Below are positions 2,730-63,335 of a stretch of 64,000 nt of DNA, piece by piece. The stretch's first letter is position 1. Every line of letters starts with the position of its first letter. The notes under the pieces were generated by a model. It ran no database searches. It was not told the origin of the DNA and saw only the letters and a list, made by a program, of their open reading frames with translations. The position numbers and the translations under genes are program-made. The stretch is taken from the IMG/VR virus record IMGVR_UViG_3300017917_001342, positions 62,001 through 126,000 of that record; one strand, 5' to 3'.

Positions 2730-3340
2730 TGCGTATAAATGAAATCAACTCCCACAATTTGAATACTGCAAGTGAAGCCGAGCAATTGGCTGCGGTAAAA
2801 AAGGATGGATATGCAATTCAATGGATACACGATCCCAGTGAGGCAGTGCAATTAGCTGCGGTGCAACAGAATGTACGGGCAATCCAAAACATCAAAAATC
2901 CCAGTGAGAGTGCGCAATTAGCTGCTGTGAATCATAATGTATGGGCAATACAAGGCATCAAAAATCCCAGTGAGAGTGCGCAATTAACTGCGGTGCAACA
3001 GAATGTACTGGCAATCCAATACATCAAAAATCCCAGTGAGAGTGCGCAATTAGCTGCTGTGAATCATAATGGATTGGTAATAAAATTCATAAAAAATCCC
3101 AGTGAGGCAGTGCAATTAGCTGCGGTGCAACAGAATGGCGCAGCAATCTTCCACATACTAACTCTCAATTCCACACAGTTAGATGATGCGGATACCAAAC
3201 GCATCATTATGGTTGCAGTTTTAAAATTGATAAAAAGTAATAAGTTATCTGATGCTAAACTACTTACTGACTATCTATCCGAACACCACGTCGACTGGCC
3301 GGAACTGGCAGTAATAAATCGTAGCTTAAAGGCGATATAG
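2729..3340 (+). CDS. DUF4116-like 22-aa repeat protein with C-terminal WPE module
   Basis: Repeats of NPSE(S/A)(A/V)QLAAV.....AI..IK; start reassigned to MRINE at 2729 (TAATG overlap). Confidence 0.8.
   Translation: MRINEINSHNLNTASEAEQLAAVKKDGYAIQWIHDPSEAVQLAAVQQNVRAIQNIKNPSESAQLAAVNHNVWAIQGIKNPSESAQLTAVQQNVLAIQYIKNPSESAQLAAVNHNGLVIKFIKNPSEAVQLAAVQQNGAAIFHILTLNSTQLDDADTKRIIMVAVLKLIKSNKLSDAKLLTDYLSEHHVDWPELAVINRSLKAI
2833..3135 (+). repeat. Intragenic 66-bp tandem repeat (~4.5 units)
   Basis: TCCCAGTGAG(AGTGC/GCAGT)GCAATTA(G/A)CTGC recurs every 66 bp and encodes the 22-aa repeats. Confidence 0.85.
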
Positions 3341-3342
3341 TA

Positions 3343-3948
3343 ATGCGTATAAACGAGTTAACACCTTATCGCAGAGATCCAAACTACAAAAAGGCTCAGG
3401 AAATATTTGCAGATCCTGAAACTGGATTACCACCTAGACGCAAATCCAAGCTTGCAAAACTAACTGCATGGTTAGATTCGCATGGCTTTAAAGTAGTAGG
3501 ACAAGGTTCGTTCGGTGCTGTATATGAAAAGCCTGGTTACCCTTGGGTATTCAAAGTATTCAACAAAGATCCTGCATACATGCATTTCCTACGTTATGCA
3601 ATGGCACATCAAGGCAACCCACATTTGCCTAAGATACGCGGTGTGATGAAAATAGACAACAACACCTATGTTGTACGTATGGAAAATCTCAAAGAAATAC
3701 CATTGGGATCAGAACCAGCTACTAAGCTGGTAAAGATACTACACAATATGGACAGCTACGGCGACATAGACGAAAAAGATGTAGACTGGATTAAGAAAAC
3801 ACTGCCTGGTATACACAACTTCTTTATGACATTTCCGCTAGGTGGTTACGAATACGATATTCACTATCAGAATCTCATGATGCGCGGCAATACCATAGTA
3901 ATAGTTGATCCACTGTATGATTGGCACGGAATGGAAGGCGACGAATGA
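3343..3948 (+). CDS. Ser/Thr protein kinase, T7 gp0.7-like (copy 1)
   Basis: Glycine loop GQGSFGAVY, VFKV lysine, catalytic DIHYQN, IVDP. Confidence 0.8.
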   Translation: MRINELTPYRRDPNYKKAQEIFADPETGLPPRRKSKLAKLTAWLDSHGFKVVGQGSFGAVYEKPGYPWVFKVFNKDPAYMHFLRYAMAHQGNPHLPKIRGVMKIDNNTYVVRMENLKEIPLGSEPATKLVKILHNMDSYGDIDEKDVDWIKKTLPGIHNFFMTFPLGGYEYDIHYQNLMMRGNTIVIVDPLYDWHGMEGDE

Positions 3949-5534: not shown

Positions 5535-5801
5535 TCAGGGATATTTAACACCGTATTCACGACAGATACTAGCATGTCCGGCTGCTGCTTCTGCAACAGT
5601 ATCATAACGTTCTACAACATCACTGTCAGTGACAGTGTAAGTTGCAGCGGTGTCATCAAACTTCAAACCAAACACACAGGTTTCGTAACGGTATCCAAAA
5701 TCAAAATCTTTGATCTTAGGCATTTCAATTGTGCTTACACGAACTGTTGCAGGACGAAGCAGTCCGCCATTGTTAGAATCCAAGTGCCAACGATTATCCA
5801 T
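5535..5801 (-). CDS. Small hypothetical protein
   Basis: ORF track; GAGG RBS; paralogous to 5296-5511. Confidence 0.7.
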   Translation of the reverse strand: MDNRWHLDSNNGGLLRPATVRVSTIEMPKIKDFDFGYRYETCVFGLKFDDTAATYTVTDSDVVERYDTVAEAAAGHASICREYGVKYP

Positions 5802-59889: not shown

Positions 59890-60089
59890 TAAGTTAAAAG
59901 CAATTTGCGTGCCGGAACTGGTATACGGCGGTGTGGTCTAAGCCAATATGGATAGGGTGTGTAATGCTAATAAACACCTTTGCGCTCGTTGATGTACAAA
60001 CATCCGATGGCGATAACTACCGGTGCTGAACAGCGCAACGTAACAGCACAGTGTTGGTTCGATCCCAACTGCAAATTGTTTTTAACTTA
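59890..60089 (+). ncRNA. tRNA-scaffold ncRNA with a ~105-nt insert and a 19-bp closing stem, no CCA
   Basis: D-arm CCGGAACTGGTATACGG; T-arm GTTGG-TTCGATC-CCAAC; stem TAAGTTAAAAGCAATTTGC/GCAAATTGTTTTTAACTTA. Confidence 0.55.
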
Positions 60090-60841: not shown

Positions 60842-61378
60842 ATGAAATATACAATTTATCAAATTACAAACACATTAAACGGTAAGATTTACATAGGTAA
60901 ACATCAAACCAAAAACATCAATGATGGATATTTTGGTAGTGGTGTAGCGTTAAGGAACGCTGTAAAGAAATATGGCAAAGAACACTTTGTAAAAGAAATA
61001 CTGTTTGTATTTGATTCTGAAAAAGAAATGAATGCAAAAGAACGAGAACTTATTACAGAAGAATTTGTAAACCGTGCAGATACTTATAATTTAGGTGTTG
61101 GCGGCGAAGGTGGCCCACACTTTAAAGGTAAGTCGCATTCTACAGAAAGCATTGCCAAGAGGACTGAAAGCCGAAAAGGCTTAAAATTGTCAGACGATGC
61201 AAGACAAAAGATATCCGAGTCTAATAGGCGTAGAACTATTAGCGATGAAACTAGAAAGAAACTTGCTGAAAAAGCAAGATTACGTAAACAAACAGACGAA
61301 ACTAAAAAGAAGCTATCAGAAATAGCTAAACGCAAATTATTGCGGGGTGGAGAAGAGGTTATCTCGTCGGGCTCATAA
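60842..61378 (+). mobile_element. Free-standing GIY-YIG homing endonuclease (Seg-like) with NUMOD3 repeats
   Basis: TIYQITN..NGKIYIGKH, YFGSG, E.E, YN...GG; repeats HSTES / SDDARQKISE / SDETRKKL. Confidence 0.88.
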
Positions 61379-61416
61379 CTCGAAGATCAGTGGTTCAAAT
61401 CCACTCCCCGCAACCA
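61341..61416 (+). tRNA. tRNA-Met(CAT), initiator-like, overlapping the nuclease 3' end
   Basis: TGCGGGG acceptor; TCGGG-CTCATAA-CTCGA; TTCAAAT T-loop; CCA end. Confidence 0.88.
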
Positions 61417-61460
61417 AAGAAAACTAGCGCAGGATGATGAATCCGTAAGACGCAAGCAAC

Positions 61461-61536
61461 ACGGTACTGCATAAGCGAGGCTTAAGCATAAATGCAGTTA
61501 AATCGCTAACGGGCAGCGGTTAGTAGAGCCAAACAC
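61461..61536 (+). ncRNA. Repeated RNA motif, copy 1
   Basis: CGGTACTG-stem-CAG(T/C)TAA(A/G)TC-GC-stem-GT-AGAGCCA(A/C)ACAC. Confidence 0.65.
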
Positions 61537-61576
61537 TTAATCTATTACGTTGCCGGGTTTCCGGCCATATTTAATC

Positions 61577-61641
61577 ACGGTACTGGCCTAGACCTAGGGC
61601 GCAGTTAAATCGCAGAGTGACGGATCTGTAGAGCCAAACAC
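61577..61641 (+). ncRNA. Repeated RNA motif, copy 2
   Basis: Same conserved junction sequences with different, still pairing stems. Confidence 0.65.
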
Positions 61642-61646
61642 ATTAT

Positions 61647-61726
61647 GGGGTCGTAGCTTAACACGACAAAAGCGGGGCGCTTGCGGCCCGAGATACGGGT
61701 ATGCGTTAGTCCCGTCGATTCCACCA
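61647..61726 (+). tRNA. Atypical tRNA-like gene with Ala identity (G3:U70, A73)
   Basis: GGGGTCG/CGATTCC-A-CCA; non-canonical anticodon loop GCTTGCG; 11-nt T loop. Confidence 0.5.
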
Positions 61727-61802
61727 AGTTAGCCGAAGCCCGCCGGCATAGAAAGCGTTTAAGGTTAAGTCCGATAACGTGGACAGTACGGGCACTACAT
61801 GT

Positions 61803-61878
61803 TCCTGGGTAGCTCAGTTGGTAGAGCGGCGAGCTGTTAACTCGTTGGTCGGGGGATCGTAACCCTCCTCAGGAGCCA
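61803..61878 (+). tRNA. tRNA-Asn(GTT)
   Basis: Cloverleaf; CT-GTT-AA loop; G73; CCA end. Confidence 0.9.
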
Positions 61879-61984
61879 AAATAATGCTATACATTCTGCG
61901 GTGTGTATGGCAGGGTAGGTGACGCAACGCTGTATAAAAATATAAGAACGAATACTTATAGCGGTGTCCCTACCTATAATATAC

Positions 61985-62076
61985 GGAGCGTTGGCTGAGA
62001 GGCTTAAAGCAGCGGTTTGCTAAACCGTCGAGGGTCGAAAGGCCCTCCACTGGTTCGAATCCAGTACGCTCCGCCA
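61985..62076 (+). tRNA. tRNA-Ser(GCT)
   Basis: Long variable arm; TT-GCT-AA loop; CCA end. Confidence 0.93.
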
Positions 62077-62152
62077 ATAAAGTTGTCATTAACCGGTTGA
62101 CACTGTAACCTAAACCATATAGTAATATGGCTGTAGCAAACGGAGAACTGCA

Positions 62153-62239
62153 ATGGATATGGACTTTGAAGACTATCTGAACTATGTTCGTCAACTGCTT
62201 GAGCAAGCCGAAGAAGACGGCTTTGAGATTGACGGATAA
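62153..62239 (+). CDS. Tiny acidic ORF (28 aa, MDMDFEDYLNYVRQLLEQAEEDGFEIDG)
   Basis: GGAG RBS; TTGACA promoter upstream. Confidence 0.45.
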   Translation: MDMDFEDYLNYVRQLLEQAEEDGFEIDG

Positions 62240-62246
62240 CTGACAC

Positions 62247-62309
62247 TCGGTACTGCTTGGCGGTTAAAGCAGCTAAGTCGCCTTTGTTCCTAGAGGTAGA
62301 GCCACACAC
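62247..62309 (+). ncRNA. Repeated RNA motif, copy 3
   Basis: CGGTACTGC...GCAGCTAAGTC-GCCTTT..AGAGGT-AGAGCCACACAC. Confidence 0.65.
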
Positions 62310-62314
62310 TTAAT

Positions 62315-62398
62315 GGGTCGTACCCCGCAAGGTGCGGGAGCGGACTGTAACTCCGTCGGGGAAACCCACGCTTGGTTCGATTCCAAGACGACCCACCA
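62315..62398 (+). tRNA. tRNA-Tyr(GTA)
   Basis: Cloverleaf with variable arm; CT-GTA-AC loop; CCA end. Confidence 0.92.
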
Positions 62399-63177: not shown

Positions 63178-63335
63178 GCCTGCGATGGCGAAATTGGAGA
63201 GACGCACCGGCAGGTGAGGCCGGCGGGCTCTAAGGAGTAGCAGTGAGCGAATGGGAGTAGGTCCGGAACGAAACCGCTAGCAATAGAATGCGAAAGTTAC
63301 CCCACATGTAGGTTCAAATCCTACTCGCAGCACCA
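63178..63335 (+). ncRNA. tRNA-like RNA (158 nt) with ~80-nt expanded variable region and CCA end
   Basis: Leu-like D arm; CCGGC-AGGTGAG-GCCGG arm; GTAGG-TTCAAAT-CCTAC; CTGCGA/TCGCAG acceptor. Confidence 0.6.

Follow-up and report, generated by a model that had tools for sequence, protein, structure and literature searches.

A structured RNA module, absent from Rfam, among the tRNA genes of phages

Three repeats in a phage tRNA array

Three short repeats lie within 850 nt of each other among the tRNA genes of a 518,643-bp phage genome with direct terminal repeats (IMG/VR record IMGVR_UViG_3300017917_001342), which raises the question of whether they are copies of a folded RNA and, if so, what that RNA might do. 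The window, i.e. the whole 64,000-nt stretch analysed (64 kb), covers bases 62001–126000 of this record. From about 57.6 kb to its end, the window contains the start of a tRNA array. ARAGORN identified 55 tRNA genes in the genome, nearly all on the + strand between 119.6 and 164.8 kb.

The first-pass annotation, made from the sequence alone, had reported three copies of an unrecognised covarying RNA motif, and this observation was confirmed. All three copies were present at the reported positions, although the reported starts included two unconserved bases. The conserved cores run from GG to GCC at 61463–61530, 61579–61635 and 62249–62303, and each is followed by a 6-nt tail ending at 61536, 61641 and 62309, respectively. 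The shared junction strings and the three stem pairs given in the annotation (GCTAAC/GTTAGT, GCAGA/TCTGT, GCCTTT/AGAGGT) were correct. The 14-mer GTAGAGCCAMACAC occurred exactly only at these three places in 64 kb, and matches with 2–3 mismatches were at chance level (13 found against 9.1 expected). Pattern, regex and covariance-model scans of the whole genome found one further copy, at 140990–141041 (G000:C1:140990-141041). The next-best hit scored 12 bits, compared to 58–71 bits for the real copies.

Copy 1 (61457..61536, + strand) consists of a 5' box (61457–61462), stem A (61463–65/61528–30), a single A (61466), hairpin P1 (61467–61497), Y (61498), UAA (61499–61501), R (61502), UC (61503–04), hairpin P2 (61505–61524), AGA (61525–27) and a 3' box (61531–36), and scored 69.6 bits with the covariance model. 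Copy 2 (61573..61641, +) has the 5' box at 61573–78, stem A at 61579–81/61633–35, A at 61582, P1 at 61583–61604, Y at 61605, UAA at 61606–08, R at 61609, UC at 61610–11, P2 at 61612–61629 (GCAGA/TCTGT), AGA at 61630–32 and the 3' box at 61636–41, and scored 70.7 bits. Copy 3 (62243..62309, +) has the 5' box at 62243–48, stem A at 62249–51/62301–03, A at 62252, P1 at 62253–62272, Y at 62273 (C), UAA at 62274–76, R at 62277 (G), UC at 62278–79, P2 at 62280–62297, AGA at 62298–62300 and the 3' box at 62304–09, and scored 62.3 bits.

Copies 2 and 3 had been reported to end 5 nt before a tRNA. This was exact for copy 3, since tRNA-Tyr(GTA), called by ARAGORN, occupies 62315..62398 (+). The element 5 nt after copy 2 (61647..61723, +) is only tRNA-like: its D, anticodon and T loops are non-canonical, it scored 26.3 bits on the Rfam tRNA model, below the 29-bit cut-off, and ARAGORN did not call it. 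Upstream of copy 1 is tRNA-Met(CAT) (61341..61416, +; called by ARAGORN, Rfam tRNA 64 bits), followed by a 33-nt module (61424..61456, +) with the layout CTAGCGC-N-GG, a 5-nt GAYRA-type loop and CC-GTAAG-N-CGCAAG. This module is optional. It was found in front of nine motif copies on other contigs, with covarying stem positions, and also occurred twice without the motif, at 1626–1656 and 3096–3126 of contig L011 (numbers with L denote the loci fetched for this study). It had no Rfam match.

A family in aquatic phages

To examine how widely the motif occurs, we scanned IMG/VR with an exact pattern and found it on 22 more contigs. Two relaxed patterns and a covariance model run over the fetched loci added divergent copies, often several per contig. 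Dropping the GGT and CC requirements mostly returned chance matches in coding DNA. A scan of metagenome contigs found 73 more stretches, with 100 model hits. In total, we collected 120 distinct copies from about 110 viral and metagenome contigs, almost all inside tRNA arrays on the tRNA strand. Most copies were found with patterns that fix parts of the core, so core conservation is overstated, while the positions left as N, the stems and the flanks are unbiased. Run labels and contig names pointed to fresh, saline and marine waters and wastewater.

Among one genome per prokaryote species, only three pattern hits were found, of which the Shewanella hit was a chance match inside an ORF and the other two were short MAG contigs that look phage-derived. 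In cultured phages, blastn with three queries found only the tRNAs, although this method is insensitive for 60-nt motifs. Two weak hits in huge-phage records were due to chance, as the covariance model found nothing in those records. Literature searches by topic and by motif strings found no description of the motif in the papers that could be searched.

Fold and covariation

RNAalifold and base counts indicated a three-way junction. It comprises stem A (GGU/GCC, 3 bp), one unpaired A, hairpin P1, the 7-nt strand Y-UAA-R-UC, hairpin P2 (closed by G.U and then C-G), and AGA leading back to stem A. P1 usually opens with CUG and closes with CAG but is fully replaceable (for example CGGA/UCCG, CAG/CUG, AUGCA/UGCAU). 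The closing stem and the Y:R lone pair had been missed in the first-pass annotation, as had the boxes on both borders and the optional module upstream of copy 1.

The covariation that had been claimed from three copies was confirmed on a far larger set, a wider alignment having been named beforehand as a test of the motif. In the viral set, 97.8% of cells paired, 114 cells changed on both sides, none of 500 shuffles reached the observed score, and sliding the partners by 1–3 columns lowered the covariation score from 0.478 to 0.11 or less. The metagenome set replicated this result (97.2%, 155 cells, 0 of 500). Y and R were left as N in every search pattern and were not part of the model, yet over the 120 distinct copies they read U:A in 61, C:G in 53, A:U in 1 and other pairs in 5, with the fourth-highest mutual information in the alignment (about 1 bit). 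They therefore form a lone pair closing a UAA triloop. No mutual-information signal was found beyond the helices and the lone pair that would suggest loop-loop or tail-core pairing.

Stem A is almost invariant, and its few changes mostly keep pairing (U.G 115, C-G 2, U-A 2, C.A 1). The G.U that closes P2 was present in 109 of 120 copies and was replaced by A.C in two copies and by A-U or G-C in eight. On the opposite strand these two conserved wobble pairs would be A.C mismatches, so the fold belongs to the tRNA-sense strand. The minimum-energy fold of copy 2 reproduced the three-way junction, but single-sequence folding energies were unremarkable (z = -0.1 to -1.5). The support thus comes from comparison between copies, not from stability.

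Position and borders

Where a tRNA lay nearby on the same strand, the upstream tRNA, most often tRNA-Asn(GTT) or tRNA-Met(CAT), ended 4–13 nt before GG in 19 of 35 cases. It ended about 46 nt before GG when the 33-nt accessory module intervened. The downstream tRNA started 9–14 nt after GCC in 18 of 36 cases. Spacers between adjacent tRNAs in this genome are 6–14 nt, so the motif fills a tRNA-sized slot. Other copies followed a promoter-like site (L024, L089), an ORF stop or another copy of a different type, and some were followed by other conserved non-tRNA elements or by an ORF.

Over 113 copies with flanks, the six bases before GG and the six after GCC shared the consensus AAACAC. C was present at -1 in 73 copies, at -3 in 60, at +4 in 71 and at +6 in 99. 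In contrast, ordinary tRNA leaders and trailers in this genome were A/U-rich, with U at -1 in 38 of 52 and C in only 5–9 of 52 at the matching places. The two boxes of one copy were no more alike than boxes of different copies (mean identity 3.12 of 6, against 3.09 for shuffled pairings), indicating that they are not target-site duplications.

Types and exchange of copies

The copies fall into types that keep their loops and change their stems by compensation, and each type occurs with unrelated neighbours. Each genome holds one copy each of several distinct types, and each type has orthologues in other phages. The core of copy 3 is identical to that of a 282,855-bp phage (L021/L066) whose flanks and neighbouring tRNAs differ. 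The orthologous site between a small ORF and tRNA-Tyr holds one type (B) in the window and a type C-like copy in L142, and no empty version of this site was found. A contig from a metatranscriptome library was 100% identical to the window over exactly 61458–61536, from box to box, and unlike it on both sides.

GIY-YIG and HNH homing endonuclease genes were the commonest neighbours. The one at 60842–61378 has GIY-YIG and NUMOD3 domains, and its end overlaps tRNA-Met. Such genes could drive the shuffling of copies, as with segB in the tRNA cluster of phage T4, but this link is an inference. No conserved partner protein was found near the arrays beyond homing endonucleases and a TilS-like enzyme.

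Comparison with known RNAs

Rfam 15 was searched at gathering score and at E ≤ 10 on 7 kb, on a 233-nt slice, on the locus of copy 4 and on 141 kb of related arrays, and no family matched the motif. The hammerhead, twister, twister-sister, pistol, hatchet, hairpin and HDV-like models gave no hit. Neither ARAGORN nor the Rfam tRNA model called the motif a tRNA. Its closing stem has 3 bp rather than the 7 bp of an acceptor stem, and its hairpin loops range from about 4 to more than 25 nt. A group I intron fragment was considered because of the GIY-YIG neighbour and a few shared short strings, but was rejected because there was no Rfam intron hit and the helix topology does not fit.

The nearest architecture is the type III hammerhead ribozyme (RF00008). 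The two share the order of elements (an open 3-bp stem, one unpaired base, a hairpin, a 7-nt strand, a hairpin and a 3-nt purine strand back to the open stem) and thus the 1/7/3-nt junction strands. By comparison of the sequence with hammerhead numbering, U and A stand at the positions of 16.1 and 17, giving a GUA triplet (of NUH form) before P1 in all but two of the aligned copies, which have G at the position equivalent to 17. U and A also stand at the positions of U4 and A6 (a UNR turn), A at that of A14, a purine-pyrimidine pair closes the second hairpin, and there is a lone pair inside the 7-nt strand. However, the core reads YUAARUC/AGA instead of CUGANGA/GAA, with G.U in 116 of 120 copies where 15.1-16.1 should be A-U. 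The residues equivalent to G5, G8, A9, G12 and A13 are absent, and the lone pair joins positions 3 and 7, not 3 and 8. The motif is therefore not a hammerhead. A search for circularly permuted forms returned only tandem copies and chance matches.

Theta (minimal HDV-like) ribozymes, reported from mammalian gut phages, also lie within a few bases of phage tRNA genes, and were proposed to cut tRNA 3' trailers (PMC10879173). These have the nested double-pseudoknot HDV fold (P1, P1.1, P2, P3, P4, with a catalytic C in J4/2) and cleave within 5 nt of the tRNA, whereas the only covarying helices of our motif are two local hairpins and the closing stem, and it lies 4–13 nt after an encoded CCA and comes from fresh, saline and marine waters. 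The species 1 and 2 RNAs of phage T4 (rnaC, rnaD) are stable non-tRNA RNAs lying 1–6 nt from their neighbours, including tRNA-Arg, in a tRNA cluster that contains the GIY-YIG gene segB. They are 119 and 139 nt long with tRNA-like 3' halves. With filters off, the covariance model of our motif found nothing at rnaC or rnaD (best hit 8.5 bits, E = 0.31, elsewhere in the T4 cluster), so they are analogous in placement but unrelated in sequence.

Type III antitoxin RNAs (ToxI-like repeats) are structured units bounded by A-rich single-stranded borders where an endoribonuclease cuts, and phages can carry mimics. Those units are 34–45 nt and form identical tandem repeats that fold as pseudoknots next to a ToxN-type toxin gene. 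Here the units are 60–75 nt, differ in their stems, are mostly single and form a three-way junction, and no such gene appeared among the conserved neighbours. The motif also does not behave as a REP- or MITE-like miniature mobile repeat, since the four copies in this genome differ throughout their stems and loops and the similarity between the two flanks is not copy-specific.

Possible roles of the module

The first-pass annotation had inferred a new self-cleaving or processing element, or a protein-binding small RNA. This interpretation was partly supported: the motif is a real, structured, strand-specific RNA motif with strong covariation and no Rfam match, while self-cleavage, cutting by a nuclease and protein binding all remain inferences. 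Our analysis establishes the fold, the family, the strand, the position, the boxes and the absence from Rfam. The evidence shows a discrete, strand-specific, strongly constrained RNA cassette with its own border signals inside a polycistronic tRNA gene array. That the module is transcribed and excised, and by what agent it would be cut, including any catalysis of its own, we infer.

Our preferred but tentative explanation, which we hold as somewhat less than even, is that these modules of about 70 nt are independent, exchangeable cassettes in the slots of tRNA genes, transcribed as part of the polycistronic tRNA precursor and cut out of it at or near the two AAACAC boxes. In this view, excision would separate the neighbouring tRNAs and release a discrete folded RNA whose invariant junction is a catalytic or recognition site. 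The weight is split between two agents, each unlikely by itself: catalysis by the junction, i.e. a new self-cleaving ribozyme with hammerhead-like architecture, is slightly preferred over a host or phage endonuclease that reads the boxes together with the fold. Self-cleavage is favoured by the small invariant junction with free stems, the conserved wobble pairs beside the junction (one with G.U to A.C exchange), the hammerhead-like layout, the precedent of theta ribozymes, and two like borders that could serve one active site. A more specific and doubtful possibility is that such a ribozyme, with a catalytic core different from that of the hammerhead, docks either border into the same active site and so excises itself, freeing the tRNA on each side.

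Several results argue against cutting, or at least against self-cleavage. No RNA ends or cleavage products were observed, as the public RNA runs consist of assembled contigs that run across the motif and show presence only. Only 4 of about 55 tRNA junctions in this genome carry the motif, so it is not a general processing device. Two copies of different types often lie in tandem with nothing between them to release, and loops are conserved within a type, both of which suggest that the RNA itself is the product, with a role beyond cutting. The catalytic hammerhead residues are absent, two copies have G at the position equivalent to 17, no permuted forms were found, and folding energies are ordinary. 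The base at -1 is mostly C, not the U that RNase P prefers, so RNase P cutting at the 5' border is doubtful.

The rarity of the motif within the array, the tandem pairs, the loops conserved within types, the lack of permuted forms and the absence of end data also favour the strongest alternative, which is possible but less likely: a stable, tRNA-sized, trans-acting RNA freed passively by ordinary tRNA processing, as the T4 species 1 and 2 RNAs are. It could act through its invariant core and type-specific loops, for example by binding, titrating or decoying a host or phage protein that handles tRNA. The presence of several distinct types per genome, each with orthologues, is consistent with this reading. 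However, no conserved neighbouring protein was found beyond those above, different types replace each other at one locus, which argues for a generic rather than type-specific role, and passive release does not need motif-specific boxes on both borders. The two readings are compatible if excision comes first.

A cis-acting transcription or folding element is unlikely. It might bind RNA polymerase in the manner of a put RNA and carry it through the array, which spans about 45 kb of mostly untranslated RNA, or might insulate neighbouring tRNAs from misfolding. The two hairpins in about 65 nt, the copies that are the first element after a promoter-like site, and the resemblance of the 5' module, a hairpin with a GAYRA pentaloop, to boxB are in line with this. 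However, the copies are clustered rather than spaced along the array, and about 25 nearly invariant junction bases and two conserved boxes are more than an insulator needs.

A DNA-level element that merely looks folded, such as a recombination or homing-endonuclease site or a miniature mobile repeat, is more unlikely still. Although identity blocks have sharp borders, cassettes are exchanged between contexts and homing endonuclease genes are nearby, copies within one genome share the junction but not the stems, the opposite of a recently spread repeat, and the strand-specific G.U pairs, the lack of copy-specific duplications and the position on the tRNA strand also argue against it. A riboswitch-like aptamer controlling the following tRNA is the least likely: a small three-way junction with an invariant core and variable stems is typical of aptamers and the position just upstream of a tRNA is fixed in half the cases, but there is no expression platform, many copies are followed by another copy or by no tRNA, the closing stem has only 3 bp, and no Rfam riboswitch matches.

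Phage tRNA arrays are known to hold a few non-tRNA RNAs (T4 species 1 and 2, GOLLD, theta ribozymes), almost none of which has a known role. The module described here is small, is backed by clean covariation, and is common in aquatic phages, including genomes of 283 and 519 kb, making it an easy target for biochemistry. If it self-cleaves, it would add a class to the short list of natural self-cleaving ribozymes and, given an architecture parallel to the hammerhead with a different core, would bear on how such folds arise. If it does not, the paired boxes point to an unknown sequence-specific processing or binding factor acting on tRNA precursors during infection.

Other non-tRNA elements in the arrays

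Besides tRNAs, the Rfam searches returned one sub-threshold YrlA hit, for which no Ro60 partner was found, as the genome has no TROVE domain, and two GOLLD RNAs (RF02032). GOLLD is an ornate structured RNA of lake phages, several hundred nucleotides long, with no sequence or structural relation to our motif. It lies among tRNAs and occurs in the same arrays as the motif, at 5692–6156 of L032 and 2809–3271 of L123.

Other elements in and around the tRNA arrays

A 33-nt module (CTAGCGC-N-GG, GAYRA pentaloop, CC-GTAAG-N-CGCAAG) with a covarying 4-bp stem was found at window positions 61424-61456. The module precedes 9 motif copies, but it also stands alone before a tRNA and before another RNA, at positions 1626-1656 and 3096-3126 of the contig sequence L011. 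Its hairpin resembles a boxB-type pentaloop hairpin. Another array module, a conserved hairpin of about 50 nt (core CAACACGGCAG ... AACGGUG, closed by a covarying outer stem), directly follows several motif copies that mostly share one P2 form. It was found after the copies at L007:2966-3037, L067:1717-1798, L010:4488-4571, L073:6382-6462, and L145:874-953 (L numbers denote contig sequences carrying the motif family or its array elements). In addition, a conserved, unannotated stretch of about 100 nt lies between tRNA-Asn and tRNA-Ser at window positions 61879-61984, and the same element recurs in another contig directly after a motif copy (after L095:371-460). This stretch had no match in Rfam.

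A small acidic ORF (about 33 aa) with promoter-like and ribosome-binding sequences was located at window positions 62139-62239, ending 9 nt before copy 3. The end of this ORF is conserved in L142, upstream of positions 3346-3421, where it is followed by a different motif type. A free-standing GIY-YIG/NUMOD3 (Seg-like) homing endonuclease gene was identified at 60842-61378. The last codons of this gene overlap the start of tRNA-Met (61341). The gene parallels segB inside the T4 tRNA cluster.

Matches to known RNA families in the arrays

GOLLD RNAs (195 bits) lie in the same tRNA arrays as the motif in related contigs (L032:5692-6156 and L123:2809-3271). Upstream of copy 4, a sub-threshold match to the Y RNA-like YrlA family was found at L004:1233-1333, which corresponds to G000:C1:140722-140822 in the phage genome (44.8 bits against a gathering score of 69). 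This phage has no TROVE/Ro60 gene.

Atypical tRNAs and tRNA-like elements

Right after copy 2, a tRNA-like element was found at window positions 61647-61723. It has an acceptor-like stem and a CCA-like end, but its D, anticodon, and T loops are odd. Its score was below the Rfam tRNA cut-off (26.3 against 29 bits), and it was not called by ARAGORN. A second stretch, at about 63179-63335 in the window, begins like a class II tRNA and ends with a canonical T arm, acceptor strand, and CCA, but carries an insertion of about 80 nt, and was called by neither ARAGORN nor Rfam. At window positions 59902-60078, ARAGORN called a tRNA-Gly(ACC) with an 83-nt intron when introns were allowed, while nothing was called there without introns. 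Outside the window, at G000:C1:129519-129593 of the same phage genome, we found a tRNA with anticodon CTA, which ARAGORN labels Pyl and which is a possible amber suppressor.
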